Part shown: in pieces, positions 14,712 to 62,789 of the stretch
Layout: every line of letters begins with the position of its first letter
How positions within the stretch are numbered: the first letter of the stretch is position 1
From: Syncephalis fuscata S228
Taxonomy: Eukaryota > Fungi > Zoopagomycota
Length of the DNA: 64,000 nucleotides
Assembly (NCBI GenBank): GCA_025786725.1
Contig: JAHLTZ010000047.1
Coordinates: 62,001 to 126,000 of the forward strand
Reading direction: 5' to 3'
Made by a program: the position numbers and the translations under genes
Notes under the pieces: model-generated
Database searches by the model: none
What the model saw: only the letters and a program-made list of their open reading frames with translations
Told to the model about the DNA's origin: nothing

Positions 14712-15360
14712 TGTACTTTGACACCACATTTGGAGTCTCCAAAGCAAAATCTGCTCCAACTCAAGTCAATTGTAACAAAATGGCCGTAGGATAGCCACTG
14801 TTACTGCTGTTATGCATGACAAAACACAAGTATAGCGCTTTTATTTGATTACTTGGAATTTACGAGGCCGATCATTATTGTTGTTGGCCATGTATAGAAA
14901 GATTAATCGAATATTAATAGAAGCCATGTGATCGCAATTCCATATCGTTTTGCAGTTGTTATTGTTGTTACTACGTACAGTGTGGTTTCTTGCGTCTGAA
15001 TGGTCTTTTCTATTCTCCAATCTTCTGCTGTTGCATTTTGGGCACATTTGTGCTGTAAGATACTCGCCTATGATGACAAAAAGGTGGAACAACTAGCATT
15101 TCTAATGTTCACTATTTTCTTGAGCATTCTTAATATCAACTTGGTAGATGCAGATTATTTGCCAACCATTGATGGAGCAAATCTACCTCCACCATATGCA
15201 ATAATGATAGGTTGAGTGTCTTCACCAGGAAGATCTTGCGATGACAGTTGTACCAGAAGATACGGCATGCCGTTGAGGTTGCTTGAACAGGTGTTGACGT
15301 AAATAAGAGAAGTAAAGACTAGGAATTGAATAATGCTCTTTATTAATGTTCAAATACGCA
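14712..15360 (-). mobile_element. Degenerate Fanzor (eukaryotic TnpB-like) 3' half plus transposon end
   Basis: Across one stop and frameshifts it reads PIIIAYGGGRFAPSMVGK...VIIGEYLTAQMCPKC...CKTIWNCDHMASINI, matching the RuvC-II / Zn-ribbon / RuvC-III layout. The non-coding terminus ...GTCAAAGTACA is shared with the copy at 23541. Confidence 0.7.
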
Positions 15361-16632
15361 TGCTATTTATATTGTTATATTCGCATTAGCGTATAGTATA
15401 TTACTGAATAAAGCAATAAGATAGCAATAGGAAAAGACGGTGAAATGAGTAAATAAAAAATATGAAAGTACAATGCTCCTCAAGCTTAATTAAATATTAA
15501 CAAGATAAATAATAAATAACATATAATTGTCATATTGATGCTATCTATTGTATTATATATTCTTCAATTGTATTTTGTCCGTTCATCATATTGTATATCA
15601 TTATATTGTCTATTGATTATATAATCTCAATAAAAGCTGTTTATTACTAACTGTATTGTAAATGTCGCTTCATCTTGGTTTGGCAATCGTCATGCCGTCT
15701 AGTGCTCTAGGCTACATCTGTTACAAATCCGGCTTGTCAAAAACTCGCCATTGTAAACAAATTCAATAGAATCATTACAATCGTTACTACTATTATTACT
15801 CAATGAATGCTTAATATATAAACCAGCACATTTTATTAACCAACTAATGAATAAATTATATCACATTCTCACTTGTCATATCCAATATTAAGGCTTTTTT
15901 ATTTCTGAAATCACACTATTATTCCCAAACATAATTAATTAAACAACAATTATTACAATAATAATAATAGTCATATGGTAAATGAATGGTAATTAAAAAT
16001 GATGATCTAATAACCATTAATTCATGATGATAGTAATAATAATTACCAAAAGAAATAAGTAAATTGTTTATTCAGTCTATTTTTATTTACTATCAAAATA
16101 CCAATACTCTTATTTCGGCTTACAGGTTGCTTATCAGGTGGGAGATTAATGAATTGCACAGACTATTGGCCAAATACTCTGCGATAGTAACGTGTGCCAC
16201 GCCATTTGTCTCGGCACATACAAAAACATTACTATAATAGATATTTAAAAACAGGTTATCAACTAATTAAGTAAAACAGCAAATGATAACATTATTATCG
16301 ACGTTTCATAAAGAATATATATTTTTGGTAACATAGCAACCTGTTTAATGTATTCGGTCTGGTAATACCGACCGGTATTTAATATCATCATTGCTTCTAC
16401 TGGTCAGCAATAGTAGTAACAATATAAAGATACGATAAATATTCAGCATTGATCATTTACTCAGTACTGTACTATCGATGCAAAGACTGCCTAAAACCAT
16501 CTTATTGTAAATAGTGTTTGCAGTTTTTGGTTTAATTTATAATCTATCATAGTCAGTACTGTATGCTATCCAACTGATTTGTTCTGTTTTTTAAAATATT
16601 GATTTGTTCACAGTATCTTTACTGCAACAACC

Positions 16633-23786: not shown

Positions 23787-24298
23787 CCTCATTACTTCTG
23801 TTGCCTGTTTGTCATACTGCACATCAAATTGTTATGTATCTATTTCTTTTCTATCTTGTTTCTGTTTACTTGAACCACATTGTATATTATAATAATTATA
23901 TTTAATAATCGCAATTATTTTATTATTTTTATACTTGTAGACCATTTCAACAAAAATATCTAACAATTCAGTGTAATAATGACGATGTATTTTACGGAAA
24001 TCAATTTAAAACAGGTATCACAATATTATTGATTGGCTTGTATGGTTTTACTTTTATTCATAATTTAAGTTTGTACTGCTTTCATCTGAATGCTATACTA
24101 TTATATCATTAGCTAATTTAATATTGAAGGAAATGATGCTATAATAATATAGATTGTCCATAAACATTACAATGTATGGTCAAAGTAGTTCATGTTACAT
24201 TAGCAAATGTACAAAGCGTATTGTAATAAAATATTTGATTATTATTATTATTTATGATATGCACGAAATAAATGCTATAAGTATTGTTAGTCTAATTT

Positions 24299-25658
24299 TT
24301 ATTGAATATTGGCTGCAAGCCGTTTAAATGTGCTCCATGGTCGTTTTACTATTTTCTTTATCTTTTCAGCTGTAGAAGACGTTAACATTTGAATTGGAAT
24401 TAAGCAGCCGGAGCTATTACTGCTATTTAACGCCACCATAAACTTGAGAAGTTTAAGTAGTTTTTTTGCTGCAACTGTATCAGATTGCGTTGGAAGTATT
24501 GGTAATTTAAATTGATACTGTTGATAATTGTTGATAAACCTTGCTTTCAATTGCTCTAGCCTTTCCAGTTCATTTGGGGTTATTTGCGGTGATATGTTTG
24601 CTGTTATTTGGAATATCTCCAATAAAGTTTTAAATTGATTTATATTACTGCCATGAAAATAACGCGGAAAGACTCCAGTAATAGATCTAAATATCTTTTT
24701 TGACAGACTTGTATTATCATCATTGCATAGATTATAAGCTGGTGTTTTATCCAAATTTTGTGGTGGCACCAATTTTTTAGTGACTAAAACATTATTTTGG
24801 ACCAATTGTCCAGAAACATCATAGTCGATGATTGTCACTTTTACGTCTTTTGAATTCGGTATTTGCCAAACCATGATGTCTACTCAAAATAGTTAGATAA
24901 CCATACAAACACACGTATCAACGTACTTTTCCCCTCCAAGTCGTTATGAATTAAGTTGGCATAGCGTAAATACATAGTACCTAGTTATTGTTAGTAAATA
25001 TATAAAATTTATAACATTACTACATACCTTGAGCCACTTGATAAAACACTTGTGGAAGAAATGTAGCCTTTTCTGCCCATGATTTTGCATCGATGAAGTT
25101 ATCCAACTCAATACCATAAGCAAACGAGTATATATAACAAACATCATTCTTAGAACTACCAGATGGTTCTGGTATTTTAAAGCTATGCAATGGTTGTTGG
25201 ATATAATCCTTGCCTTTTGCTATACTGTTTTTGATTAGATCTTTTACTGCTTTTAAAATCTATTTTCTGTGTCAGTCAATTTTTAATAACAAGCCAAATT
25301 CTTACATTAAATGCTACATCCTCTTCGTACGCTATGTCATTCCTTATACATTTTAGAAATCTACGCTGATTATTCCATACGACATCGCCAACGCTTACTT
25401 CATGTGATCCACCAATCCATTTGATTGAGGCAAATCCATGACCTTTAAGTGTATCGTCATTTTTAAAATAAATATACCCAGGACTTTCAAAACCAAGCTT
25501 AGCTATTATGGATATTAATTTTACTAAAAACCACAGATTTAACACAAATATGCACACTTACCACCAATCCTTGCACCAATAGCATTTGCCAGTGATACAC
25601 TGCAAAGCGCTATTAAAGCACAAGTTGATATAACGTTGCACAAAGTAAAACTAGTCAT
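24299..25658 (-). CDS. Secreted atypical protein-kinase-fold protein (5 exons), copy 1
   Basis: Signal peptide MTSFTLCNVISTCALIALCSVSLANA; RFLKC (Lys kept); IHNDLEGKN; VTIIDYD. Reading frame is open after splicing. Confidence 0.8.
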
Positions 25659-26288
25659 GTCAAAACAGCTATTCTATAAGGTAAAGATTAAAAAAATTGT
25701 GATTGTGCGTTTGCGGAAAATAGGGAATAACTATTATATGAGAAACGCCATAATACGATGCTTATTTATATATATATGTGTAACTGAGATTTAAAACAAT
25801 TGAAAATTTTACAAGTATTGCTAAAAATAAATATTGAACTATAGAAATGGAATTCTTTTGCTGTCTTTGAGTATGTTAATACCATTTACAAAAATTGTAA
25901 AACGTGGGCTGATCAAAAGAGATGAAACGTCAATACTTATTATAGCATACTACTTGGATGATCTATACCATATAGAATTGGCGTATTTTTACAAAACAAC
26001 TTAACATCTACTATCAAATGAACACATAGAGACACTTTACTAAACAGTACAAGCTATTGAACCAATTAAACAAACAATGACATCCTGCGTTAATGATTGG
26101 TGCTCAACCATCCCCAAAAAAGATTTACAACTTTACCATGAGAGCTTATCATACTTGAATCACATCATCGCTATCCGATAAACACGCCTTTTCTCGCTCT
26201 TATCGTGTCATATAGGTTAACGGGCCGTAGATATATCGCTACTAAAGTTTTCTTTTGTATTTATTCATTATAACAATTAGTTGCCACG

Positions 26289-31242: not shown

Positions 31243-31583
31243 CTCATGGCTATAAAAGCCAAAGCTTTACGTTGAGCAGTTTGGTAAATAAAATAAACAA
31301 TAGCAAAATGCTTTAATATTACTAATCATTAGTTGACAATCTATTCAGCTATCCATTAAATATAACATTTAGCTTGAGTGACTTAGTAAAAGAAATGTAT
31401 TTATTGACAATAAAACTGCCTAGACTAATCGATAGCATCGATAGTAATACATTTAGTACTATGGCGATGCTATAGCCCAAAAGTATAGACTTGGTGGAAT
31501 GATTATCAAAAGGCGGCTTAGTGTCAGTAAAACATAAATTGAACGCTGGATTTAATCTGTAGTTGCTAGCTTGATACTTGCGT

Positions 31584-33994
31584 TTATTTTCCTACTTTAA
31601 ATAAATTGGATAATGCAGTCAATATTAGAAACTTATGGACGACAATTGATAAGTTATTCGAATAACAGTACTTACCTTCTGTTATAATTATTTATTAGTT
31701 CCAATATTAATAAATGAACTTTATTAACACTGCCATACTCTTACTTATTATCATCCATCAAAGCCTATAGAGATAAGTCAATTGAAGATCATGAAGATAA
31801 TTAGTAATAATAGTAGTTTGGAGTAGCTATTTAGCACTTACTGACTAGTTATGTTAACAATTAGGCAGGTAAATAAATATAATTAATTTTGTATATTAAT
31901 CATTTAAAGTAAACTTACTAGCTAATGATATTATTTTGACAGATATATACATAAAAATATCACAATTAGTGTCTTTCTAATGCGTATTCAAATTTATTAC
32001 TTACTAGCTGTTGTTATTGATTTAAAAATAGTATTCATCAAAATATTAGATAGCTGCATATTACTCTGATTGCCTTTAATTTCCACTTACAATCTAATGA
32101 TAGATCGTGTAAATACAGTGTACAGTAATACCGTTAATATGTGTTTGTTTCTTTAGTTATGAATTCAAACATACCTTTTACCGATTTCAATAAACATGCC
32201 ATACAATCAATAAATGATTTAAATTAGCAAAATATTATAATGCATAATAAACATGTCGAATAGTATAACGTGGCCAACTATACATTCTAGTCACCAACTT
32301 ACCATTTGCTAACAGGTTAAAAAGTCAATTTTAGTAAACAATATAATGCAAAGGATTTTAAACGCAATCTGTGTCTGCACTTACTTATCACTAAAGTCAT
32401 AATTTATACAATAAAATATTAGCTATCGCAAATAGTCTAAATACAATCTAATTCGACCCACCGCCTATTAACATTAGTTAAAAACTATTACGTTAGCAAT
32501 ATGATACAATGCATATTTTCAAGTAGTACAGAAATTGCACAAGGTATAATCTTACATCCAACTGTGGTATTAATAAACCAGATTAAATATAATAAAGTAT
32601 TAATTATTATCAATTAGCTGAACATATGCTTTAGCTTACGAAATTCTATTAGCATTATTTTGTTAAATGCAGCATCAAATCGAAATATATTAGTAATCTA
32701 GGATTTATAGTGATCTATAAACTTACTCATATCTATTGAAATTGGATTCAGAATACATTATTAATGTTTTATTATGCTAATGATAATAGAAAATTACCGT
32801 CAACTATTTTAATAAACAAATGATTTAGATAATATAATGGTTAGTTTATATTCTAAATTAAAAATATTATGATTACTTACGAACTTCTATTAGTTTTAAT
32901 AATGCAGCATAGTTTGTTAAACCTATTGGAAACTTAAGTTTTATTCAACTTACTATCTATAAATACGGTTAATCAATCAAATTAAAATTGAGTTAATACG
33001 CTAATGACAATTTACAACTAAAACTCCAAACCTTAAGCTTACTTTTTTCTAATAATTGGTATTTATCAGTTATGTATAATAGCAGTAAGCGGCAGTCTCT
33101 TTTTAATTGCTTAAATCATAACCTACCAGACGCTATTTTTACCATATAGCAAACATTGATAGTCACAGCAATCGGTAGTTAGTAGTTGAATACTTATAAA
33201 TTATTGTAATTTACCCGGCACTATGCGTGTTTTTAGTACAATTAAAGCGCCATGTAATTAGTTATTATCCAATTAACAAAGTTGTAACTTACAAGATTCT
33301 ATCATCATTTAGGCATTGATATTGGTATGTAAAACAATGTTAGTTATGGTATAAACACTGATACCATAAATTACCGGAAACTATCAATGATAATAATTTA
33401 TAAATACGCAGTTAGAATCTTCAGATAATTGTTACATATTACAACTTACTTAATGCTATTAATATCAATTTGGAAAATATAGAGCATCAATATAAAGCTA
33501 GTTTATGAATTAATCATTTAGATTCTAACTTACCAGAACCTATTTCAGCAATTTGATGAATATTTAATATAAAATTTAACATTAACTTACGTAGAGCTAT
33601 CGATAGAAATTGAGAATGTTAGATAATAGCTAAATATAAACATTTATAATGTAACATACATGAACCTAATAAACAAGTTAGCGAACTAAACAACAATAAA
33701 GCATAAATAAATGTTAAACGTCCGATTACAACTTACATTTTGCTGTATAGACGTGTATCAATTAAATATCAATAAACTAGTATATTAGATGTTATACAGC
33801 TGCTTAACACTGTGTCTTACGATCATCTATTTGTGTTATTTTATTATAAATAATAGCAAGAAGTTAATAGTTTACTAAAGATAATTTTTGTTGCAACATA
33901 CCGCGGCGAACAATCAATGGTTGGCGTTAACGTCAATAACACTTGTTAGACACGCAACAACGGTCGTGCAAAGAATCGCCGTAGTAAGTCTCAT
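31584..33994 (-). CDS. Micro-exon gene encoding a small secreted protein (~29 exons, 25 of them 3 or 6 nt)
   Basis: Exon 1 (33994-33902) encodes MRLTTAILCTTVVACLTSVIDVNA-(x)PLIVRR-G; it needs +1 nt near 33921, otherwise TGA. Twenty consecutive YAG|3-or-6 nt|GT exons then splice to DDPKCSSLRSALISESLPASEKNKVLDDMKFLGCVITN with no stop. The 3' exons are less certain. Confidence 0.85.
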
Positions 33995-35227
33995 GGTTGC
34001 GTTGGCTCAGTTCAGTAAAACAAAAATGTTGTGTTAAAATGGAAAGTGAAAGTATGTACCTTTCATCTAGCGGTCTACGCACTTGTGCGCTATTTAAGTC
34101 TGTAGTCTGGCCTGTTTGACGCACAATAAACTAATTATAGATACCAAGTCTATGCATCCGTATGTGGTATTAGTCCACGTGCATACTATTTTCATCATAG
34201 CGCTTATGTGTCGAGTGTAAAACAACATTTTTTTATTGACCAAAGCGCTGTAACGCCTTTGGTAGCAGCGACAACAAAGGCGTATGCAGTCATTTATAGC
34301 AAAAAATAGATTGATTCATGGCGTTGATACAAGCAGCATCTGCATTGCATGCCTTTGGCCTTGTGCTTTTCATGCAGATACAAAGGTCTAGAATGCTTTT
34401 GAAAGCTTGTTTGAATATAGCATTACGCTATTCCAGTACACCTGTTAGTTATTAGCTGTACGCATACAATTACAAAATCAATTGCTTGACTAACACTATA
34501 GTATACCATAACATAATATATAATAGTGTGGGGTAGAATGGGAATGATATAAGTGGATATAGGATGTATGCATACTGGATAACAAATCTATGATGATGAG
34601 TATTTGATGATTGATGTCACTCACTACTTATTATCGTGTTTAATAAGAAGAATATCACCAAATTTAGTCATTTGATTCTTGAATTATATTAAATAGTTAA
34701 TAAAGCCAATTTATTTAATACATAAAACTAAATACATATTTAAAGACCAGTATCTAGTATTGATGCTAGTTATTGTAATGAATTAATAATACATACTTGC
34801 TAAGTTTGTTACGCTTGCTGTCTTTAATTTTTGGAAAATAAGAAGCTGGCACTTTTTTATCTTGGAAGAAAGGGCGCGCTTAGCTGTTTCCTGCTCTTAC
34901 TAAAAGCACTTTGAGTTTGCATGACATGGTTTACCTAAATAGTATTTTGCAAACATTGGGTTTTTATCTTTTTAATCAGTCCACGTTTTACAATTTTTGT
35001 AAATGGTATCAGCACATTCTAAGCTAATAAAAAGTTTTCCATTTCTATAATTTAATAACTATTTTTAGCAATACCTGTAAATTTTCAAATTTATCAGCTT
35101 TTAGCTATATAAATATATAAAATAAAAATGGCGCATTCTATTCTCTCTTTGTAACAACTATTTTTTTACTTTCACAAATACACAAATAGGTTTTATTTGC
35201 AATTTATTTTATAAATACTGGTCCAAT

Positions 35228-36558
35228 ATGACTAGCTTTACTTTGTGCAACGTTATATCAACTTGTGCTTTAATAGCGCTTTGCAGTGTATCACTGGTAA
35301 ATGCTATTTACTCAAAAATTGGTGGTAAGTGTGCATATTTGTGTTAAATCTGTGGTTTTTAGTAAAATTAATATCCATAATAGCTAAGCTTGGTTTTGAA
35401 AGTCCTGGGTATATTTATTTTAAAAATGAAGATGCACTTAAAGGTCATGGATTTGCCTCAATCAAATGGATTGGTGGATCACATGAAGTAAGCGTTGGCG
35501 ATGTCGTATGGAATAATCAGCGTAGATTTCTAAAATGTATAAAGGACAGCATGCTGTACCGCGAAGATGAAGCATTTAATGTAAGAACCTGGCTTGTTAT
35601 TAAAAAATTGACTCACCAAGAAATAGGTATTAAAAGAAGTAGAAGACAAAAATTTAATTCAAGACGACATGGCGAAAGGCAAGGCGTATGTTCAACAGCC
35701 GATACATAAATTTGAAGTACCAAAAGCATATAATAATCGTAAAAACGATGTTTGTTATATCTACTCATTTGCTGAGGGTGCTGATTTGAACGACTTCATC
35801 AATACAAAATCATGGGCAGAAAAGGCTACATTTCTTCCACAAGTGTTTTATCAAGTGGCTCAAGGTATGTAGTAATGTTATAAATTTTATATTTTACCAA
35901 CAGTAACTAGGTACTATGTATTTACGCTATGCCAACTTAATTCATAACGACTTGGAGGGGAAAAGTACGTTGATACATGTGTTTGTATGGTTATCTAACT
36001 ATTTTGAGTAGACATCATGGTTTGGCAAATACCGAATTCAAAAGACGTAAAAGTGACAATCATCGACTATGATGTTTCTGGACAATTGGTCCAAAATAAT
36101 GTTTTAGTCACTAAAAAATTGGTGCCACCACAAAATTTGGATAAAACACCAGCTTATAACTTATGCAATCAAGAAGATATAATTTTGTCCCGAACAATAT
36201 TCAGATCTATTACTGGAGTTTCACCGTATCAATTTACGGGCAATAAAGCGAATATATATAGAACTTGTTGGAGATTTTCCGATTAACAGCGCAAATATCA
36301 CCACAAACAACATCGGATAAACTTGAAAAACTAGAACAAATGAAAGCAAATTTTATTAAGCATTATCAATATCCACAATATGGACTGCCAATACTTCCAA
36401 CGCAATCTGACGCAACAGCAGCAAAAAAACTATTAGGACTTCTTGAATTTATGATGGAGCTAAACATGGGCAATAACTCTGACTGTTTAATCCAATTTAA
36501 ATGATGACGCCTACCTATACAGCTGAAAGAAATAAAGCAAATAATAAAACAAACGTAG
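35228..36558 (+). CDS. Secreted atypical kinase-fold protein, copy 2 (inverted duplicate of 24299-25658); 3' end disrupted
   Basis: Near-identical leader, intron 1 and catalytic region (IHNDLEGKN, IIDYD). Frameshifts at ~36264 and ~36492, and TAG at 36556 where copy 1 has Trp. Confidence 0.75.
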
Positions 36559-37079
36559 AACACATTTAAACAATTTACAGCTAATATTTAGTAAAAAGTA
36601 AACTAGTAGTGCTTATAATATTTCTTTTGTGTATTAGATAATAATAATGATCAAATATCTTGGTACAATAAGTACTGCAAATAATACATTAAATACATAT
36701 CTTTATTTTTACGAATCTATATACTGCCATGTTACACATCAACTATTCAAATTATTTACTTTACTGTTATTACTAAATTACTATTTTATAGCGGCATTGT
36801 AACAGACACATATTATGGATAATATAGCTATGCATTAAACTCATTATTAATTTTAGTCATACTGTAGCAGATGATAAACTCGTTTATTCAAATACTAATA
36901 ATAAAATACTATATAATCATACTCAAATAGCACATATTAATAAAGCAAGTTTATATAATGCAATAGTAAATAAGCAATATTATTTATAGATTTCATTTAC
37001 TTGCAGAATTGTGATTTAATTGTATAAAACAGAAATCATTCCTAATAGTCGCTTTTCATTGGTAGATAGATATTGCTAT

Positions 37080-39895
37080 TCATTGCTGGTTAGATGAAGA
37101 AGAAGAAGGAGATATACGTACACCCGAAGGCATGGACGACATCGAGGCTGATGTGCGTCGTTGCTGTTGTGGTATAGATACAGAAGAGGACAAAGCAGAG
37201 GCCGTCATCGTTATTGTAGCCGGAGCGGCAGATGTCGGCGCATGCATACCATGGCCTGGATGATAATAGTACGAAGGCATTGTTACTGTAGGATCTTCTC
37301 CTATATGATCTTCGTCAGTATAGCTTTTTCTGCTGTTATTCGCATTATTGCCACTATTTGTTGTGACTGCTGCTGGTGCGGTAGGCGAATAGGGCATGGG
37401 ATTATAGTAGATGGCGTTACCAGTTGGTGCACCGCCACTATTAGGCGGCATGAATAGTGGCATTGCTCCCGGATAAGGTATGTATGTTGGCGGCATCGAT
37501 TGCGGCGATGGATGATTGGGATCAACGCCAGTTGAATAAGGCACGGAATACTGACTCACTACAGGTCTATTCGTTCTGATTATTAGTATCTATTGTGTAA
37601 TGTATACCATGTTACTTACCGGCCATAATAGCCACCAGCTGATGAATTGCCGCCTGTAGTATTTGTAGCGCCACTGCCGGCACCGGCACCAGTACCACCA
37701 GCACCACTTGTAGCATTGACCGGTGTAACGGGCACTACTAGGCCACTGGCCGTTTGTACAAGAATCGGTTGATGCGATACACTCACTTGCGACGAAGCAC
37801 GATGATGGTGAGCATGGTGAGGATGTGTCTGCGATGGATGCTGATGATGATGTGGATGATGTGGGTGGTGATGGTGTGGATGAATAGCTGGTGGGCCGTG
37901 TGATGTCATCATTTGATAGGGATTGCCATCGGTAATAGGAATAGTTAGACCATTGGCGGTTGTATAAAGATAAACAACTGGACTTGTTGTCGGTGCTGTC
38001 GTTGTAGCCGTTGCCGTTGTATTAGTACCGGTACTTGTAGTGCTAGCTGCACTAGTTGGTGCAGCAGTAGACGCAGCCGAGTTGACCATTGACGTCATGG
38101 TGGATTTCGTCGCAGTAACTGTCGATTGGACGGCATTGGCAGCAGCATTGGCAGCAGCAGCAGCCATACCTGCATTAGCAACCGTTTCTGCCGTAGGACC
38201 AAGTGGCTGAGCTATTGGACTATTTGCAGCTATTGTCGTTACAGTAGATGTTTGTGTGGCCATTTCTTTAACTGCAGCCTGTTCTTCTACCACGGCTACA
38301 TTAGTAACAGCTTTTTCTTTTGGTTTCGGCTGTGATGGTGTCACTGCTGGGTGTGTTGAGAATTTGGCTGCACTATTATTATTGGTCGCTGCAGATGGTG
38401 TACCCGATAATGTCACATTAACAATATTTCCAAAACGTATTTGACGACCCTTAGACGATGATGGTGGCAATGGTGCTGATGGTGTTTCTGTAACATCAAC
38501 AGCAGTTTTATCTAATAGATTTAGTGTTAATTGTGTAAAATGGTTTAATTTAGTTTGATTACCTTTACTTAGTGTTGTATCAGCCTTTTGCTTATTAAAT
38601 GTAGTTGTTCCAGTTTCTACAGCAGGCCTTGGCTTGTATGTCTTTTGATCAGGCTTTAGTGTTGCCACGTAATGATCGCGACCTTCCATGCCTTCTCCTC
38701 GGAATCCACCAAATGACTAAGTATTTGATATTAGTTACTGTTTAATTACATTATTATAATAACTTACACTATTGTCATGCAAGGACACACCTCTGCCTCT
38801 ACCTCTACCTCTACCTCGGAAAGGTCGGCCTCGTCCGGTGGCACGATATAAACCAGTGCTATTTCCTCGATAACCTGTAGGTGTTACTCTTTCTCGCTGC
38901 TGTTCTGTTCGTACTAGCTCTTCGAATCCATCATGGCCCCACTGTCTTCCTGCATTGCCGCTATAGTTATTTGAGACGGCTTTGGTATGAGGTGCTGCTG
39001 TATCAGTCTCTTTTGTTGCCGATTCAGACTCATTTGACTTGATCGGTGTTGGGTTAGCTTTAACGGATTCTTTTGTTGTAGTAGGCGGCACTGCAGATAC
39101 TTTATTCGACTGTTCGCGTACTGGCGGTGTATTTACCTCTTTGGTTACCGCAGTAACAGTACGTTTATTATCATCGTCATTGTTTACATTGCTGTTACGT
39201 GGTCGACTGGGATAAGATGCCATAGATCGCGGATAGCCACGTCCTCGCGGCATAGCACGACTGTACTGCCCTCGTCCACGACTAAAGCCTCGTCCACGCG
39301 GTCGATTACGTAATCCATCAGGCATAAATCGGTCGTCGTGGCCCCAAAATGAACCAATGTGCGGTACAAAGGACGGATCATCGGCTAATCGCTGTCGATA
39401 TTCATTGCGTACCTTTTGTCTTTGTTCAAAGGCATTATCCGCAGCTTTGAATCGGTTGGTTCGCAAACGACCTTCCTCTCTACATCTTGTGGCAAATACT
39501 GGCGGTGATGATGATCGTAATTTACCACCACGTCCTCTAATCGGTCTACCTCTTGTAGAGGGCGCAGTTGTACGTTTTGATTTATTTGTAGCGTTCTGTT
39601 TTTTTGTATCTACTACAGCTTCTTTACTGCTATCACCAACTACTTCGTCTTCTTCAGTAGCTGAATTACCTAACTCTTCTTCTTCTTCGTCGTCGTCGTC
39701 GTCGTCGTCTTCTTCTTCTTCTTCATTTTTATCTTCTGTCTCGTCTTCTTCGTCGTCATTTTCCAATTCACTTTCTTCTTCTTCTTCTTCAGATAAAGTG
39801 CCTACAGTACCCTCAGAATACTCGGACAGAGAGTCTTCCGCCTCATCGGCGTCTTTCTTTCTAACATCGGGTGCACGACGTCGCAAACGATTCAT
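37080..39895 (-). CDS. CASC3/Barentsz (Btz domain) exon-junction-complex protein
   Basis: Btz motifs DPSFVPHIGSFWGHDDR and WGHDGFEE, acidic N-terminus, RG-rich segments; two introns. Confidence 0.75.
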
Positions 39896-40205
39896 AACTG
39901 TAAATAGACACGTGTTAGATGGTTTGTTAGGCTTACAGCCTTCTTCTATTAATGTCAACAACTCACCAGAATAACAACTAATAAAACACGACTGGACTGA
40001 ATAATAGTCGTTTGGAAACGAGGTAGATTCGAATACAGTGGCGTCAAGAGGAAAGTGAGAGCAGATCGTGGAAAAAAGGAGTCGACTTCAACCAAAAGTC
40101 AACCAAAACCAATGTTTTTTCATTATTTCCACCATAATAAACAACAAAATTAAACTTTCATTTATTAAAAATATCGTGTAGTAAACTTTCTTTTTAACAC
40201 CAACA

Positions 40206-41810
40206 ATGGACACCATCATTACCAATACTGCACCACAACCAATGGCTGAAAGCCGGTTAATAGCAGTATTGACTGCACTGCCATCTAGCGACTATTGGCA
40301 GTTTCTTTTATATTTGAATGGTTCGACAGTGGCACGCCTAAGTGCTTGTTGTCATTTATTAAAAGAGAAGATACGGACCGATAGCTTATTATGGCAGTAT
40401 CTTTATCATAACCAGTTTCTAAATAACGAGCTTAAAGTTAAAGAGATGGATTTTGTATATTGGTGTACACGTTCCAGTCCTAATACACAAAACGTGCCAA
40501 ATAGTAATAAATCAAGTGTAATTGATTGGTATGATGTCTATCGACGACGAATCATTACTGAGCAAAATTGGCGATATGGCCGTGGTCAGCGCACTGTTAT
40601 TCCACTGCCCGAACCTGATAAATATAAGCAATGGTCGATTGGTAATAACTCTGCCACAGGCATGATATTATATGGCCATGCGTATGGAAATAATCTACAG
40701 CGTGGTCCTGCTGTGGTAGTCATCGAAGGTACACCCATCAACAATATAGCAACTAATTTAAAAACAAGTGCTATTAATGATTCAAGTAACATGACACTAA
40801 GGCCTACTTTAAAAAGATTAGAATCAAACGAATTGAAAGATAGTAATAAGAACTGTATAACACTTATGAGTAATCAATATATCGTTACAGTCATTAGCTG
40901 TTTCTATTCTAGTACAGTTTACATGGAAATTCGTGAACGAGGCTCGCTTAATCTTAAATCAACAATCCATCTACCTTATCGCTCAAGTATACAAATGATT
41001 AAGGGTCGATGGGCCATGTTCATCTATCGTGAAATGACATATAATGAGGCACATTCTGCCAAACTTATGGTATGGGATATAGAACGCGGTATGGCTTGTC
41101 CCGGCTCAATCGACGATCTTGGCAATACACGGTCATTTCATCAAGTGAACGAGGAGACAGCATATGTATATGTAGCAAAATGTGATTCTGCAACACCAAC
41201 GACTATCCATTGGATGTACTATGTATTTTCAGCAACAGAATCTGTACGTCTCGTAAAACAAAGCAGCTTTCAGACTAGTCAGCGGATTGTTGCATGCTTG
41301 GCAGATTTTACATTTGATTCAACTCGAGCTTTAATTAAAACACTTAATTCTACCCACCAACACCAGTTCTTCCTACACAGCATTGCTGCAGACACACAGC
41401 AACAGCAGCAATTATCAGAACTGCTAATACCAAAAAATAATGCAGCTATTGAATTGGTATTACGCGATATAAGTAGCGACACGAGTGAAATGCAATCTAT
41501 TGTGCAGTTATCTGATGCAAGCGAGAATAATGTCGATATGGATAATTATGTTGGCTGTCAGACTTATGAAGAAATAGATAGATGGAGTTCATCTCGGTGT
41601 CTGCATCTTATCGGGCAATTATGTGTTTTTATTGAGCTTTGTACTTCAGGATTAAAACGTGCAACATTGGTCGATGTTAAGACGAATGCTTCTGTTCGAT
41701 TCTATAGTCCCTATGCTACTAATAATGATTGCGCCTTTTTAATGACCTCATTTATTTGCTTGGTACCTAATCGTAATGAATTGGTCATTGTTGATTATGG
41801 CGCATTGTAA
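40206..41810 (+). CDS. Intronless F-box-like protein with a beta-rich C-terminal region
   Basis: LPSSDYWQFLLYLNGSTVARLSACCHLL..DSLLWQYLY..DWYDVYRRRIITEQNWRYG; 534-aa ORF. Confidence 0.65.
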   Translation: MDTIITNTAPQPMAESRLIAVLTALPSSDYWQFLLYLNGSTVARLSACCHLLKEKIRTDSLLWQYLYHNQFLNNELKVKEMDFVYWCTRSSPNTQNVPNSNKSSVIDWYDVYRRRIITEQNWRYGRGQRTVIPLPEPDKYKQWSIGNNSATGMILYGHAYGNNLQRGPAVVVIEGTPINNIATNLKTSAINDSSNMTLRPTLKRLESNELKDSNKNCITLMSNQYIVTVISCFYSSTVYMEIRERGSLNLKSTIHLPYRSSIQMIKGRWAMFIYREMTYNEAHSAKLMVWDIERGMACPGSIDDLGNTRSFHQVNEETAYVYVAKCDSATPTTIHWMYYVFSATESVRLVKQSSFQTSQRIVACLADFTFDSTRALIKTLNSTHQHQFFLHSIAADTQQQQQLSELLIPKNNAAIELVLRDISSDTSEMQSIVQLSDASENNVDMDNYVGCQTYEEIDRWSSSRCLHLIGQLCVFIELCTSGLKRATLVDVKTNASVRFYSPYATNNDCAFLMTSFICLVPNRNELVIVDYGAL

Positions 41811-44059: not shown

Positions 44060-45399
44060 AGTGATAAATAAACTTGAATAGAATATAGGAGTAAACTACG
44101 TCAGTATAATATTGGATAGTATGAAAAGTGGAAATGTTTAAATGACGTATCATATTTGACTTGCTACCTCGTTATTTAAATATCATCATGGCAAGCTACT
44201 GGTTATAGGCCTTTGGAGATATGCGTCACCTCTATGTTTGTAGTACACGGGTAGAATTTCTCAATATAAATACACACAAATAATTTCTGTTTTTAATAAG
44301 GCATTGGTTTTTACTTGTTGTTATTGATAGTCAACTTGTTTTTTATTAGTCATTGATTATCACAGTTCAACTATAATAAACTAAATAGTTTGTATTGTGC
44401 CAAGTAGAAATATAATAGACCTAGAAACGATAGTGTATTTATTGATATTGAATAAAAATATAGGTTTTATTAATTATATCCTTTTTTTAGTTGAGCAGTT
44501 ATAACAGCATGGCCATAATACCACGACAATAAAACACTAAAACACTAAAACTTGATTGCTGATCAGATGATTTTAATACATACATTAGTAATATATAGTG
44601 CGTTTACTAAAATAATTGTTGCTAATATTAGTAATCAATCTAGTCACAGAGATTTAAATTTATCGATCTTTGCTATGTCTAATTCTTACGCTTAGACAAT
44701 AAAATATAGTAAACTACAGATTAGCTCATAATCAAGTCGTAATGACAATAATACGATATTTACAGTAGTGCGCTATGAGCTGATTATTGCTATCAACTAT
44801 AAAAAACATTTATTTCATATAGAATGCCATTAGTCAAGCACAATATTGTAGTATAGTAAGGCAGTATTCATGCAACAGCATTATGGATATAGTTTAATAC
44901 TCGTGTTGAGTGGTTTATTTTTTTAATCATTTAATTCCAAATCAATCAAATTTTAAAGTAATTCACTAGACATAGGTGTATATGAGTTGGTGTTTTTTGA
45001 TATCGTCTACTTCTTAAATTCAATTACATGGATGTAATGGGCTGTCATAATGCTATACCAGTTTATACACAATATATTTCATATTGACACTAGAAATCAA
45101 ATGGAATACATAGTATTAATAAGATGTCTCATTATATTATGACATGCAAACCAACAGAAAGACAACTGCGTATAGCGGATAAGGGAGATGTACTTTAGTA
45201 AACTATTAAAAAAATAAGCAATTACGTGGTTTAATTAAGATTAATGGAAATCGGTTCTAGGTCCCGGTACATTTCTAAAGCATTTGTATTTAATTAGCTA
45301 CCAATATACATGAAATGTGCATAGTTTTGTAATATCATGACTCGTAATGTTAAACTTTGTTTTAGATATTGCAGCTTATATGATTAAAAAGCGACTTGT

Positions 45400-52500: not shown

Positions 52501-55392
52501 TCATTGAAGTCTACGTTCAAAAGGTCAATCCGGCTCGTTCTCCCGCTGTTATTGGCGCACTATTGGATGTTGATTGCGATGAGAATATGATTCGTAGTCT
52601 CTTAATGTCAATTCAAGTACCAGTTCCCGTTGATGAGTTGACACATGAAGTCGAACAACGCAATCGACTCAAGTTAATCTTGCCGTATCTTGAAGTTCGT
52701 ATTCGTGAAGGTAGCCAAGAATCAAGTGTTTATAATGCTTTGGCAAAGATCTATATCGATAGCAACAATAATCCGGAACATTTCCTTAAAGATAATCAGG
52801 TATGGAGTATTATATTAATAACTAGTATTTGTAACTTATTCTGGCTATTACTATTATAGTTTTATGATTCACGTATTGTTGGTAAATATTGCGAAAAACG
52901 TGATCCATATTTAGCTTATGTGGCCTATGAACGTGGTCAGTGTGATATGGAACTGATTAATGTCACAAATGAAAACTCCATGTTTAAACACCAAGCAAAA
53001 TATCTTGTAAAACGACGTGAACCTGAATTATGGGCTCAAGTACTGGACACGTCGAATCCATTCCGTCGTGCAGTCATCGATCAAGTAGTATCGGCAGCAT
53101 TGCCTGATTCACAAGATCCAGAAGATGTTTCAAATACAGTCAAGGCATTTATGGCTGCAAATCTACCTCATGAACTTATTGAATTGCTGGACAAGATCAT
53201 TATGGAAAACTCGGCCTTTAGCGATAATCGCAGTTTACAAAACTTGCTTATCCTTACAGCAATCAAGTCGGACAAGACGCGTGTCATGGATTATATTACA
53301 CGCTTGGACAATTACGATGCACCAGACGTTGCTGGATTGGCCGTTGGCTCTGGCCTATTTGAAGAGTCGTTTGCCATTTATCGCAAGCATAACCAGCATG
53401 CCAGTGCTATTAGTGTATTGCTAGACAATCTCGAAGATCTTGATCGTGCACTTGAATACGCTGAACGCTGCGATGAAGCTGAAGTGTGGAGTAAATTGGG
53501 TCAGGCCCAACTCAATGCCAACAAAGTTGTTGAGGCAATTGAGTCATATGTACGTGCCGATGATCCTAGCAACTATCAACAAGTAATTCAAGCAGCTGAT
53601 CGAGCTCAAATCTCTGAAGAGCTTATTCGCTATCTGTTAATGGCACCAAGAAGTTGAGGGAAGCAGCCATTGATGGAGAACTTTTATTTGCCTATGCTAA
53701 AACTAATCGACTAGCGGATACGGAAGAGTTTTTGAGTGGACATAATCTTGCTAAGGTAAATAATATATGTATTACAATATGTGTATATTAATACTAATTA
53801 ATTGGCGCTGTTTTTAGATACAAGAGGTTGGTGAGCGCTGCTTTGAAAACGGCATGTACGAGCCGGCCAAACTACTATTTGCCAACATCTCCAACTGGTC
53901 CCGTCTCGCTTCTACCCTTGTATTTTTGGGCGAGTATCAGGCTGCGGTCGATGCTGCACGTAAAGCAAATGGCACCAAAGTATGGCGCGAAGTCAATGCG
54001 GCCTGCATTGAAACGCGTGAATTCCGTCTTGCACAGATTTGTGGTCTACACTTGGTTGTGCACGCCGATGAATTGCACGAACTTATTCAGACGTATGAAA
54101 AGCAAGGATTTGTTGATCAGCTTATTGAGCTATTGGAAGCTGGCCTTGGCTTGGAACGTGCACATATGGGCATGTTTACTGAGCTATCCATTCTTTACGC
54201 AAAATACAAGCAAGAAAAGATTATGGAGCATTTGAAACTGTACAGCTCGCGTATCAATATTCCAAAGGTTATTAGAGCGTGTGAGGACGCGCACCTATGG
54301 GCCGAGCTTGTTTTCCTCTACGTACACTACGATGAGTATGATAATGCTGCACTTACAATGATGCGTCATTCAGTCGATGCTTGGGACCATGCTCGCTTCA
54401 AGGATGTTATTATCAAGGTGTCCAATCTTGATTTATACTACAAAGCGCTACGTTTCTACCTCGAGGAACAGCCGATGCTTATCAACGATCTATTGACGGT
54501 ATTAACACCACGTATTGATCATACACGTGTGGTTAAACTGTTGGAGAAGTCCGACAACATTCCATTGCTTAAACCATACTTGGTTTCAGTTCAATCTAGC
54601 AATAATCAAGCTGTAAATTCAGCCTATAATGAGCTATTGATTGAAGAAGAAGACTATAAATTGCTGCGCGACTCGATTGATCATTTCGACAACTTTGACA
54701 ACATTGAATTGGCTCAAAGACTTGAAACGCACGAACTACTTGAGTTCCGTCGTATTGCCGCTCATCTTTTTAAGGTAGCTAAACAACACTGGTATATCGA
54801 TGAATAGCAAAGCTAATTATGTAATATATAAATAGAAAAATAAGCGCTGGAAGCAATCCATCGAGCTATCAAAGCTTGACAGTCTTTTCAAGGATGCGAT
54901 TCAAACGGCTGCCGAATCAAAAGACACTGAAGTGGCCGAAGAACTTATTCGCTACTTTGTCGATACCGATAATCGTGAATGTTTTGTAGCTGCACTTTAT
55001 GTTTGCTACGAACAAATGCGTCCAGATGTAGTAATGGAACTGGCGTGGCGCAACGGCCTTACCGACTTTGCCATGCCATTTATGATTCAAACAATGCGCG
55101 AATACATGTCTAAGGTATATATATTGCATGGAATATGATCGAGAATAGCGAATACTAACACGATAATGGCCAATAGGTGGATACACTGGAGAAGCAGAAT
55201 GCTGAACGACAAGCTAAGGAAACAACGAAGGAGAAGCAGCCAGATGGTGGCCCAATGATTCGTCCAGGTGGTGGCATGGGACCAGGCGGGCCGTTGATGA
55301 TTACCTCGGGCATTACTGGCGTTGCACCGCCAAATAGCAATCACATGGGCTCACCTGGATTTGGTGGCGCTGGTTATGGTGCGCCGTTTTAA
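49591..55392 (+). CDS. CHC1: Clathrin heavy chain
   Basis: [63 protein letters not shown]; about 12 introns; a 1-nt deletion near 53647 breaks MARKK. Confidence 0.97.
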
Positions 55393-56161: not shown

Positions 56162-57100
56162 ATGTCATTTATTAACTATACTAATCCAGAGGACACCGAG
56201 TGGGTGAAGAACGCAACGAAAGTGTGAAATATTCCTGTAAATCCACTTGACAAAATAGCAGTGTGTGCTTTTTACGCAACAGCTGCAGAAGCAGACAATA
56301 TTCCCGGCTTGCGCGAGCGATTAATGGCACGCCATCTTCAAACAATATTTGATATCATGATTCTTTGTGGTTTTATTAGCAATTTTATTATAGCCAGCAA
56401 GATGGTTGCGCCGCGTCCTCGTTCGTTTATCGCTTGGTGGTGTCTGCTTCCATCGGCGCTAGGTGCAATAACATGTTTAATATTTGCACTTAACAACTGA
56501 GATACTCCTTTAATTGTCGCAATGTGTGGCGGTCTTTTGGATTTTCAAATGTAATATCAAGTATTTGCAACAGCTTGGTACTGCTTAACAAAGCCTATCT
56601 AGTCCTCTATCGACAGAAATGGGTCATATACAGCAGTATTTCATGCTGTCTTTCCATTGTGCTTCAACTAGGTAGCGCAGATTCCGATCTTTTTTCTTTA
56701 TAAACTGGTGAGTACCTGTAAGCAACCATTATATATATATATATCTGACGTAAATTAGAACAATTGTTACCACCATATTGGTACGTCACTGTAAAAACAT
56801 GGGCAAAGCCATTAATCGGTCAAATAACCCCAAAGCGAGTTACATAGAGCATTTGTCGGAAATTGCAATAGCCAAGTTTTAGAATAGTGCCATTGTATAT
56901 TTTAATTGTGTAAATGTTAGTAAATTTCCTGTAAAATAAAATGAAGAAAAAGGCTATGATGTGATTTAAGTATTGGTGGCGGTCATTGAAAATAATCATA
57001 ATGATTACCAATATTCTAATTTGAAGTCGATAAACTCCAAGAAACATCAGTTTTTTCGAAATTGATCTGGTATGGTACCACTTAATCGTAGACTTTTAAG
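56162..57100 (+). pseudogene. Decayed multi-TM (GPCR-like) membrane protein gene
   Basis: Fragments HPLDKI..GLRER..NFIIASKMVAPRPRSFIAWWCLLPSALG, NCR and LLNKAYLV, separated by several stops and frameshifts. Confidence 0.5.
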
Positions 57101-58036: not shown

Positions 58037-59878
58037 TTAACCTTTCACTGTTCCATAATACGGAATAAAAACAGCACGGTCTGATGGTGGTTTATTGAAT
58101 CTTGGATTAGGATCGAGTACAATATATCCGGAATATGACCATATCTCATTCTTTTGTATACTCGTGGGCGTACTAATCCGTACCAGAATCTCACCTTTTT
58201 GCTTTGGTTGTAGGCTAATAGATCCTGGAAAGGAAACGGCTGCGATTAGAGATTGTTTTGATAACATATCACTAAGATACGATACTCTTGGAGTCGCTTC
58301 AGCTGGAATATGTGAAATTTTATATAAGAGTGCAGTGTCGGAAAAAGATGAAATTTTGATCTGTACATTCGCTGTATTGGCATAAGTACCTTCTATATTA
58401 ATTGAAGATGGTTCAACGTGAATGCGTTCATCATCTATTAGTTTGCTAAGATTAATCATGCCAGCACCTTGATGTTGTACAGGAATGTAGGAATCTACAT
58501 TATTCTCTTTGACTGGAATTGCGTTGTTTTGTAATATAGTTTTGACATATCCAATGTCAATCAAACTATTTTGATTGCGTTCAACTATCAGCGCAGTTGC
58601 ACCGGCAACATATGCAACAGCAGCTGATATATCACTGAAATAAGGCTTGTCTCGTTTGTCATAAATGGTAGTAGTGTAAATTTTGTGACTTGGCGCTAAA
58701 ATGTCAGGATAGAAAGGTGATATGAATGGTTGCTTTTGCGGTCCAGCTGTGTCGACAGTAATGCTACTATTTTCAATGTAGCCATACTTTTCTGCAAAAA
58801 CATATTTATATGCAAGCTTATTTTCATAGCCTTTTTTAATAAATAAAGCATCTTTTTCACTAATTTGAAATAAAGGTATATTACATCTTGTTTTTGCTCT
58901 AAAATCATCGCTTATAATGACAAGTGCAGCCATTCCGATCGCTTTAGCACGCTTTCGCATGGCCAAAGTTTTTGTTGTTTTATACCAAATAAGTGCAATG
59001 TCATCTTTTTTAAAACCATCTAAATGATTTTTTAATTTGCGTGAATACTTGCTAGGAATAACATCCACTTCTTTGCCAAAGTTATATTTCATATTTGAAC
59101 ATCTAGACGTAAATTCAATACGACGTCCCGTTGTTTTTTCTTCAAACCAATGCGATAAACGATATTCTTGTTTAAAGCCACCAACGCTTAAGACAGGAAG
59201 ACCTTGATATAAAAAGTAATTTGGATTCATAAAATTATTGGCTGATGCTGCAACAATCATAATCACGCCATGTTTTGCAGCATCTTCTATTGTTTCTCTC
59301 AGCCGATTGCCATATTCATCTACAATGGCAATTTCCGGCAATACAATGATTTTCATTTGATCATCAGTGATTGCAGTTATTAGAGCTTGCAACACCAATA
59401 AAGTTGAAGTCGGACCTTTACAGCCAAATACACGATAGGTGCCAAGTGTCGCCTCGGGCGCAACTCCAGTAAAATAAATGGTTTTTGCAACGGCAATTCC
59501 AGCTAGACTCATACCGCGATTGTTGCAATAAGGTATATTTTCGTAGTTTTTTTCATTATCTACATATTTATGGTAGTGCTTATGATTCTTTTTAAATACA
59601 TGAGCTTCGATATTTATTCCGCTATCAATGATTCCAAGCTTTACGCCCCTTCCTTTAAAGCCCATATCGTGAAGTGTTTTAACGCCGGTGGGTACATAGT
59701 AAGGTGTTGCATAAACTGGGTTATTAGTGATTTTGGAGCCAATATAGGGGCGGTTGTAATTAGGTTTCGTGTAAAAGTCATCTTTATATGATTTGGTACT
59801 GTTTACGGCAAAATGTTGTGTTGAACAAAATAGCAGCAGTATAGAAGCTGCTAACTGCTGTGTCCGTCTTAATATCAT
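58037..59878 (-). CDS. Secreted subtilisin (S8)-like protein with PA-like and Fn3-like domains; catalytic His and Ser lost
   Basis: Signal-like leader MILRRTQQLAASILLLFCSTQHFAVNS; GRGVKLGIIDSG, GVAPEATLGTYRVFGC, PDILAP, QGAGMIN, YSGYIV; intronless. Confidence 0.85.
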   Translation of the reverse strand: MILRRTQQLAASILLLFCSTQHFAVNSTKSYKDDFYTKPNYNRPYIGSKITNNPVYATPYYVPTGVKTLHDMGFKGRGVKLGIIDSGINIEAHVFKKNHKHYHKYVDNEKNYENIPYCNNRGMSLAGIAVAKTIYFTGVAPEATLGTYRVFGCKGPTSTLLVLQALITAITDDQMKIIVLPEIAIVDEYGNRLRETIEDAAKHGVIMIVAASANNFMNPNYFLYQGLPVLSVGGFKQEYRLSHWFEEKTTGRRIEFTSRCSNMKYNFGKEVDVIPSKYSRKLKNHLDGFKKDDIALIWYKTTKTLAMRKRAKAIGMAALVIISDDFRAKTRCNIPLFQISEKDALFIKKGYENKLAYKYVFAEKYGYIENSSITVDTAGPQKQPFISPFYPDILAPSHKIYTTTIYDKRDKPYFSDISAAVAYVAGATALIVERNQNSLIDIGYVKTILQNNAIPVKENNVDSYIPVQHQGAGMINLSKLIDDERIHVEPSSINIEGTYANTANVQIKISSFSDTALLYKISHIPAEATPRVSYLSDMLSKQSLIAAVSFPGSISLQPKQKGEILVRISTPTSIQKNEIWSYSGYIVLDPNPRFNKPPSDRAVFIPYYGTVKG

Positions 59879-61075: not shown

Positions 61076-62789
61076 GATGATATTGCAATCAATAGGAAAA
61101 AACGTAGAATGAACTGCGTGAGTTGTTTGAAATAAAATGGATAAAAACGATGATTAGACAGAGAGTAGAGCATGACGATGACAGCTATTTAAAAGGGATT
61201 TCTTTCTTTAAAAAATGATGTTAATTGCCATTTTTTGATTAACTAAAATTACGGAAACGTGCAAAATTCTAAATAAATCGTATTACTATATTTGGTAACA
61301 GTGCCCTTGAATTCACTTTTAAAGCAGATCGTCATTGTTTTCGATGTAAATAGCTCTTTATTCCATCCTCCCAGTTGTTGATACTTTAGCACACTAGACA
61401 AATGGCGTGTTTACTTTCACTACATGGGTAAAATAATATTCTTTGTTTATAGCGCCGTAAAGTCTATATTTTATTGTGCGCTATGTAGCGTTATAAAGGT
61501 GTGGTATGTTTTGGCGTTTGCTGCTTTAGTTTAATATTATCTAGCGTGGATCATGAGCGCTTTATCGTGCGTTGCTACTTTGTCTTTGGGGGCTACAGCC
61601 TTCAACTTAACCCTAATCTGACCGTTTAGTTGCAGTATTCAATGAACAGTACTCGGCCTATCCGTAGTCCCAGGGCTATTCTAATCTAAAGGCTTTGTTG
61701 CTATCAAAAAAATTAACTTGTAGTCGTTGTCTATCGGTCGTATCGGGCAAATTACGTGCTTTGGGACCGCGGCTGCTTGTTAGTTTTGCGGATAGACAGC
61801 ATGGTGTTTATGGAGCTGGCGGTACGTCAGTGGAGTACAGGACGAAGAACTTTATTGGATATCACATTTAAACGCGTGTACTGTTGTGTTTGCTATCGGG
61901 TAAAACCGTTAGCAAACACAACAATGACTGGTGTTTCTGCGGTGCTTATTGCTCTGTTTAGCGTGCAGAGTTTTTGACCAGTCGTAAAACTATTACTGAA
62001 AGACACCTTGACAAGGTAGTTTGCGATGAGCTGCTTGATGTACGCTTCATCCCACACTAGTTACATATTTACTAAAGCGGAGGTGTGGGGCAAGCGAGAT
62101 GTATTGCAATATTGCAATGCAATCCTAGTTGATGACAAATCTTCAATTAGCTATAAGATTTGGATGGAACCAAAGGATTCATTGGCTTGGTAGTTATGAC
62201 GGATGGGACATGGTCCTTGACTATAATGAATATCTACACCACTGGTAGATATTAGGAACTCGTATTCCGCGCATTTGGTCATTTAATAGCCATAGTCACG
62301 GGGGGAAGCTTCACCACTGTCATTGACTTACCAGCAATGTGTCGTCTTATAGCTATTGATAATTGATAAACAGGACCACATACAGTACTTTAATACATCT
62401 GTACCAGAACAAATTCACATCCTTTCTAACTGACACCGACCAAAGAGACATCTATTTAATAAATGACTTTTATTCTTTTAATACATTTACTATTATACTG
62501 AATATATGTTTTATAATAATGAGTAGTTTTGGTGGTAAAATGACTTTTATTCTTAATGCATTTATTCATTTACTATCAATCTGTTCTATGATGTACTGAC
62601 ATGTTGGGTAGATTGACTTTTATTATTTACACTTCATTTATTAATCAATTAAACTCGGCTGTTTATAAATATTGACTGACAGGCTCACATCTCACAATCT
62701 ACGTCACTACATTTCTCTTTCTCTTTCTTTACACTTGACAGCATATATCCATTGCATATATTTGTACACTCCATATATACCATCTAAAT

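Follow-up and report, generated by a model that had tools for sequence, protein, structure and literature searches.

The deposited annotation of the mycoparasite Syncephalis fuscata leaves an interval of several kilobases without a gene, and we examined whether this interval holds a gene with very small exons. The DNA analysed (the window) is a stretch of 64,000 nucleotides from contig JAHLTZ010000047.1 (assembly GCA_025786725.1; Fungi, Zoopagomycota), and Syncephalis is a genus of mycoparasites within the Zoopagomycota (PMC10386755); it does not cause disease in crops, animals or people. All coordinates refer to the window unless they carry the prefix L002 (S. plumigaleata) or L003 (S. pseudoplumigaleata). 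No gene is deposited between the phosphorylase kinase gene, which ends at 31242, and a kinase gene, which starts at 35228. For this interval an initial annotation had proposed a minus-strand gene in which a signal-peptide exon is followed by a long series of exons of 3 or 6 nt. In our analysis this architecture is real and conserved, and as read from the sequence it very probably belongs to a gene that is spliced to encode a small secreted protein. The gene lies at 31.6-34.0 kb on the minus strand, spans 2.4 kb and has ~29 exons, of which the first encodes the signal peptide, 25 measure 3 or 6 nt and a few are longer (Table 1).

All of the proposed micro-exons were found at their coordinates, each with YAG before it and GT after it, and the proposed number of 25 was confirmed as a main run of twenty (eighteen of 6 nt and two of 3 nt; m1 to m20) plus five 3-nt exons in the tail. 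Shuffled sequence did not yield comparable arrays: a stricter donor pattern was present 24 times in 31550-34000, compared with a mean of 1.05 (maximum 5) in 1000 dinucleotide shuffles, and the excess was limited to exon lengths 3 and 6. In the whole window, the pattern YAG-N6-GTRWG matches 22 times, and 14 of these matches, all minus-strand, come from this 1.5-kb run; a splice-site chain search gave the array scores of 105 and 40, with nothing else above 14. Weak chains of 3-4 short exon candidates at 56672-56910 (+), 16046-16231 (-), 44583-44796 (-) and 62383-62658 (-), with scores of 8-14 against 105 for the array, are probably ordinary genes or chance.

The spacers were then judged by two signals that are independent of array detection. 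Of the 20 introns, 19 have a branch-like YTRAY motif 8-45 nt upstream of the acceptor (shuffle mean 10.9), and only 2 contain AG in their last 20 nt (shuffle mean 10.8); neither value was reached in any of 2000 shuffles. The introns of the S. plumigaleata orthologue described below gave 16/19 and 1/19, respectively, and clathrin introns in the same window carry branch-point and AG-exclusion signals as in the array. The array spacers thus look like ordinary introns of the S. fuscata genome. They measure 51-103 nt overall and 51-91 nt in the main run, where all 40 splice sites are intact; GTAAGT is the most frequent donor (9/20 in S. fuscata and 11/19 in S. plumigaleata) and TAG the S. fuscata acceptor in 18/20 cases. 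Given one base from exon 1, the first 20 micro-exons were free of stops, as had been claimed, while the other two frames contain 4 stops each. This open phase-1 frame is by itself modest evidence (P ~0.03 with random local hexamers). Every junction of the main run is in phase 1 and 20/20 exons are multiples of 3, and because of this uniform phase each 6-nt exon provides one full codon and parts of two others. The coding region is broken every two codons, which amounts to about one intron per 9 nt of coding sequence.

Table 1. Predicted exons of the S. fuscata gene (window coordinates) and one-base gaps in conserved coding exons of S. plumigaleata (L002).
Feature	Position	Strand	Remarks
Exon 1	33902..33994	-	ATG at 33994, phase-1 donor at 33901; 93 nt as assembled; hydrophobic signal peptide of ~24 aa (by inspection) and short pro-piece with dibasic pair at its end
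m1-m11, 6 nt each	33043..33826	-	Lowest coordinates 33821, 33737, 33660, 33591, 33534, 33450, 33375, 33293, 33215, 33127, 33043; orthologue in S. plumigaleata also eleven 6-nt exons
m12, 3 nt	32954..32956	-	Orthologue 3 nt at same rank
m13-m17, 6 nt each	32556..32886	-	Lowest coordinates 32881, 32798, 32727, 32640, 32556
m18, 3 nt	32462..32464	-	Sequence identical in S. plumigaleata; second cysteine codon finished here
m19 and m20, 6 nt each	32303..32390	-	m19 at 32385-32390, m20 at 32303-32308
Candidate longer exon	32175..32201	-	Without AG acceptor; two candidate donors (32181, 32174)
Four 3-nt exons	31842..32093	-	At 32091, 32005, 31919, 31842
20-nt exon	31745..31764	-	Sole well-bounded exon whose length is not divisible by 3
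3-nt exon	31676..31678	-	Coding or 3' untranslated, depending on the preceding exon
Presumed terminal exon, 5' part	31560..31591	-	Support weaker than for other exons
S. plumigaleata one-base gaps	L002 1894, 2570, 16935, 16973, 18281, 19361

We reached the corresponding locus of S. plumigaleata via the neighbouring Btz-domain gene. The order of clathrin, a membrane transporter, an F-box-like gene, the Btz gene, a gap and phosphorylase kinase is kept there, and the gap holds an orthologue in the same orientation (L002 13964 to ~16200). Its exon 1 is intact, with 28 codons plus one base (85 nt), and ends in phase 1 at a GC donor. The series that follows (eleven exons of 6 nt, one of 3 nt, five of 6 nt and one of 3 nt) equals the S. 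fuscata series over 18 exons, and the chance of two 3-nt exons falling at equal ranks in both species is 1 in 153. Exons m19 and m20 correspond to what reads as a single 12-nt exon in S. plumigaleata, a predicted intron gain or loss. In S. pseudoplumigaleata, exon 1 is likewise intact (29 codons plus one base, 88 nt, phase 1) and is followed by a 73-nt intron and a 6-nt exon whose donor lies at the extreme contig end (L003 3884-4057).

Phase 1 is the sole frame open in both S. fuscata and S. plumigaleata (joint chance ~0.002); it scores best of the frames, and zero register shift scores best. The ungapped in-register comparison gave 8/38 identical residues (21%), with a BLOSUM62 score of 25 and a shuffle P of 6e-5. 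Among the identities are the cysteines at positions 5 and 34, which lie 28 residues apart and in register in both species, and the two residues after the second cysteine; the codon for the first cysteine is divided between m2 and m3. Three of the eight identical residues use different synonymous codons in the two species. Since the other two frames, compared in register, are also above shuffle (P ~0.002) and codon-position identity is flat (15, 17 and 15 of 38), part of this similarity simply reflects homology of the exon DNA. Orthologous introns were no more similar than non-orthologous pairs and could not be aligned between the species. Exon sizes, frame and splice signals were therefore kept while the DNA between the exons turned over, and the register of the main run has been held between species whose introns no longer align. 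Syntenic orthologues in two other Syncephalis species in this way bear out the proposal that a signal-peptide exon and micro-exons together form a coding gene. Recurring at one position in related species, the layout looks like a genuine gene design, which had until now been known chiefly from blood flukes. From these comparisons, a protein-coding gene for a small secreted protein that is conserved across the genus is the likely reading.

The expectation that automatic annotation would miss the gene also held, as no gene was called in S. fuscata and the deposited S. plumigaleata model, KAI8057187.1 (68 aa), is partial and mis-spliced. Five exons reproduce this model exactly; it includes two predicted 6-nt exons and three predicted introns, along with an unlikely first intron and one retained intron. 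The model, which may come from RNA reads or from ab initio prediction, offers outside support that is independent of the present reading and is suggestive, not proof. The S. plumigaleata introns are 56-157 nt long, and one junction requires a weak donor and the 157-nt intron (L002 14774-14930). Inside this intron there is a strong donor at 13 nt, use of which would lead to a stop, and near 14845 there are an internal branch motif and a TAG; the intron may be the remnant of a decayed intron-exon unit or a regulated unproductive splice. Two GC donors and two donor pairs 6 nt apart were noted in this gene (L002 14043/14049, 14617 and 15003/15009), and at both places with tandem donors either choice keeps phase 1. 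Reading the ninth S. plumigaleata micro-exon as 13 or 19 nt was rejected, because both versions contain an in-frame stop.

The 3' tail is a different matter, since after m20 the irregularities in both S. fuscata and S. plumigaleata exceed what error rates predict. The candidate exon at 32.2 kb preserves phase 1 whether it is read as 18 nt, read as 27 nt or skipped. As written, the 20-nt exon has three consecutive stops in the phase-1 frame, and with an X at one position it adds six further residues. The initial annotation had offered a tail that either stops or continues with one restored base; the stop stands for the sequence as written, and its version is one among several readings. In S. 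plumigaleata the candidate tail exons measure 15, 20, 3, 5, 3 and 33 nt, and the acceptors of two are poor; the two tails can be aligned in loose register only with an X at two breaks, an alignment on which we place no weight. Whichever tail reading is used, the predicted S. fuscata protein has ~83-90 aa before processing.

Regarding expression, transcription would start upstream of 33994 on the minus strand. In fungal splicing generally, recognition of such short introns works across the intron itself. Each of the ~28 short U2-type introns would accordingly be defined by its own donor, branch point and YAG, which lie within 50-100 nt of sequence, and with such recognition the 3-6 nt exons would need none of their own. 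Removal would proceed mainly from the 5' end onward, so that the upstream exon stays long at each step and crowding is avoided. The signal peptide, judged by eye in the three orthologues, has a basic residue after the Met and a hydrophobic core, and small residues precede a proline-containing pro-piece. It would direct the product to the ER, and the pro-piece would probably be cleaved at the dibasic pair; the Kex2-like RR that had been suggested is plausible in two species, and the third has RK instead. The two conserved cysteines would probably make one disulfide. A helical-hairpin or half-saposin fold, an idea drawn from the cysteine spacing, was dropped when hydrophobic-moment tests were not significant, and since the periodicity and amphipathic-helix tests failed we claim no fold. 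Because length and cysteine spacing are fixed across species with sequence identity at 21%, the form with all exons would be the selected main product. Duplication of an intron-plus-exon unit is the simplest explanation for the uniform phase and size, and the array most likely grew by repeated events of this kind. The only trace of them is a weak 48-nt direct repeat (73%, spacing 86), largely splice motif, formed by the identical 3-nt exons at 32005 and 31919 with their introns.

Small secreted proteins of fungi typically have a signal peptide, a Kex2-cleaved pro-piece ending in a basic pair, conserved cysteines and rapid divergence. The Syncephalis product resembles them in its predicted signal peptide, dibasic pro-piece, cysteines and divergence. 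The identity of 21% in the mature peptide compares with 84% in conserved segments of neighbouring genes and 38% in the F-box neighbour, and is too low for dN/dS. Secretion, small size, fast divergence and lifestyle together would fit a role at the contact with the fungal host, which is the likeliest role in our view, although we consider the case for it evenly balanced.

The initial annotation had likened the gene to the micro-exon genes (MEGs) of Schistosoma, and we drew the features for this comparison from PMC4350168, PMC4015677 and bioRxiv 10.1101/2023.06.21.545858. MEG-1 to MEG-35 have a 5' signal-peptide exon and many small symmetric exons, 10-20 per gene, of 3 or 6 to 81 nt and mostly 15, with introns of 0.1-5 kb that are longest in the middle; they are described as flatworm-restricted, form multigene families and show exon skipping in cDNA (PMC4350168, PMC4015677, bioRxiv 10.1101/2023.06.21.545858). 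The Syncephalis gene shares with them the 5' signal-peptide exon, a mature protein built from many small symmetric exons, a small, predicted secreted and apparently fast-evolving product, a parasitic bearer and a tendency to be missed by automatic annotation. All coding sequence after exon 1 (~two thirds) lies in exons of at most 27 nt, which agrees with a MEG-like definition, and the tail has one 20-nt exon. The differences are that 25 exons are of 3 or 6 nt, where MEG exons are mostly 15 nt and less numerous, that introns are 51-103 nt (S. fuscata) or 56-157 nt (S. plumigaleata) instead of 0.1-5 kb, and that the lineage is fungal with one locus known per genome, whereas MEGs form families in flatworms. 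The likeness therefore holds for architecture and fails for lineage and for the long introns, and the gene is not a member of the MEGs. It is a more extreme, convergent variant of the micro-exon gene design.

Fungal micro-exons have been reported before. Among the exons that fungal spliceosomes include are some of at most 15 nt and even of 1-3 nt, and missed exons break gene models (PMC12230235, PMC11121469); Coprinopsis cinerea has 27 exons of 3 nt in 26 genes (PMC12230235), and Xlr2 of Trichoderma virens is a scattered case (PMC11121469). These micro-exons are isolated within ordinary genes and often shift the frame, whereas the Syncephalis exons stand 20 in a row and encode nearly the whole mature protein. 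In the literature covered, which included few subscription papers, no paper linked micro-exons and Zoopagomycota. The locus extends a design described as flatworm-restricted to a fungal parasite, and the link between this design and parasitism thereby becomes testable independently. It also offers a 2.4-kb natural substrate for asking how, and in which order, the spliceosome handles 20 successive exons below its own footprint, and it points to a class of predicted secreted-protein genes that gene callers and short-read aligners overlook.

We next considered whether the same gene serves mainly for variation as in MEGs, whose defining behaviour is exon skipping, with combinatorial skipping that would generate secreted variants to defeat host recognition or widen binding. 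As the exons are symmetric, a skip would leave the frame intact and create hybrid codons not present before, and a pool of variants may result. No single skip leads to a stop in S. fuscata, only 11/190 and 9/171 possible skips bring one in, and the in-frame tandem donors of S. plumigaleata, the fast divergence of the protein and the MEG precedent (PMC4350168, PMC4015677) point the same way. However, stop-free skips are neither rarer nor commoner than base composition predicts, and the stop counts speak neither for nor against its use. In addition, one single skip does produce a stop in S. plumigaleata, the fixed exon number and cysteine spacing suit one folded product, and the strong donors suit constitutive inclusion; unit duplication would also leave the symmetry. 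On balance, actual use of skipping, as judged from the exon structure, falls a little short of being an even prospect, and variation as the main function is a tentative reading that we place below it. The broader proposal of an independent MEG-like diversifier, in which ~25 phase-1 exons are skipped combinatorially to pit variants against fungal hosts and which belongs to a hidden Zoopagomycota family, seems unlikely to us.

A second alternative accepts the gene in the genus and takes the S. fuscata copy as a recent pseudogene. As assembled, exon 1 of S. fuscata lacks one base for phase 1 and reads into TGA at 33916, and this frameshift, the absent acceptor near 32.2 kb, the 20-nt exon and a lineage-specific inverted kinase duplication directly upstream all speak for decay. 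It had been suggested that a base is missing near 33921, and the three-species alignment of exon 1 indeed shows a one-base gap near 33922, beyond which the pro-piece and the dibasic pair realign with both intact exons. Comparable deletions were found in essential genes. In the same assembly, clathrin heavy chain has a one-base deletion at ~53646 (53643-53648), where two pieces, read in different frames and separated by two bases, correspond to residues 1122-1160 and 1162-1196 of solved clathrin, and phosphorylase kinase has one at ~29169; both are probably assembly errors that distort gene models. In S. plumigaleata, six one-base gaps occur in ~7 kb of conserved coding exons of these two genes (~1 per 1.2 kb). 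The exon-1 gap lies among short C and A runs, and most of the deletions that the two assemblies show in essential genes are placed in a similar way. In S. fuscata, ~2 deletions are visible per 9-10 kb of coding DNA checked, and this low background favours a pseudogene, as it sets the prior for a hit in such a small gene at only 10-20%. Against decay stand the intact main-run splice sites and a frame that is open through 20 exons. As deletions of the same type in clathrin and phosphorylase kinase make an assembly error likelier than a pseudogene, we lean towards the exon-1 break being such an error and not a recent loss of function, and a recent pseudogene is an unlikely account of this copy.

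The remaining alternatives dispense with a protein. A spliced non-coding host transcript whose introns are the product would account for the tiny exons and the many regular introns, which are typical of snoRNA host genes. We nevertheless regard it as very improbable, given that there was no Rfam match to E=1, that no intron has both C and D boxes, that exons are conserved and introns are not, and that a signal-peptide exon and open frame recur in several species with frame and cysteines conserved. A decayed tandem repeat or a chance splice-like pattern in AT-rich DNA has in its favour the many tandem repeats that the motif search of public collections returned, some in spliceosome-less bacteria, but is scarcely credible, as Tandem Repeats Finder was blank at the array, the introns are not copies of each other (mutual similarity 16.4, barely above the 15.7 of shuffled sequence, the weak 48-nt pair being the one exception), the exons all differ, the introns carry branch points, the frame is open, and a syntenic orthologue has unalignable introns.

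We also looked for relatives of the gene. When exon 1, the only exon of sufficient length for a search, was compared with 1.84 billion representatives only KAI8057187.1 matched, this model as a query found only itself, and exon 1 gave nothing above the cut-off in Pfam; the joined exons served for the frame check and for the in-register comparison of the two species, with X at breaks. A second array was absent from the Syncephalis DNA scanned, ~100 kb in all (~79 kb from S. fuscata and 21 kb from S. plumigaleata). The viral, metagenome and prokaryote collections were scanned with a motif of three linked 6-nt exons; those matches with chains of at least 5, and the least repeat-like of the others, turned out on inspection to be tandem repeats and not diverse arrays, and no diverse array was found among the matches listed for the metagenome scan. 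No array lay close to phosphorylase kinase in Mucor hiemalis or on a metagenome contig without assignment, and metagenome contigs that carry the neighbouring Btz gene are too short and end before the locus.

Some further observations concern the neighbourhood. An inverted ~1.7-kb duplication (74-91%) of a kinase-like gene, at 24219-25918 and 34970-36670, flanks the phosphorylase kinase and micro-exon genes on both sides. The kinase-like copy at 35.2-36.3 kb is uncalled at the corresponding S. plumigaleata site, S. pseudoplumigaleata is without space for it, and contig JAHLTZ010000047.1 carries several further kinase-like genes. The deposited S. fuscata clathrin model has 1608 aa. The Btz-domain gene is a single 696-aa model in S. 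fuscata (37080-39961) and two models of 494 and 331 aa in S. plumigaleata (L002 10001-13050), possibly split by a frameshift error. Elsewhere in the window there are two F-box-like genes (1076-3850 (+) and 40206-41810 (+)) and an S8 peptidase gene of one exon, whose product has a likely signal peptide (58037-59878 (-)).
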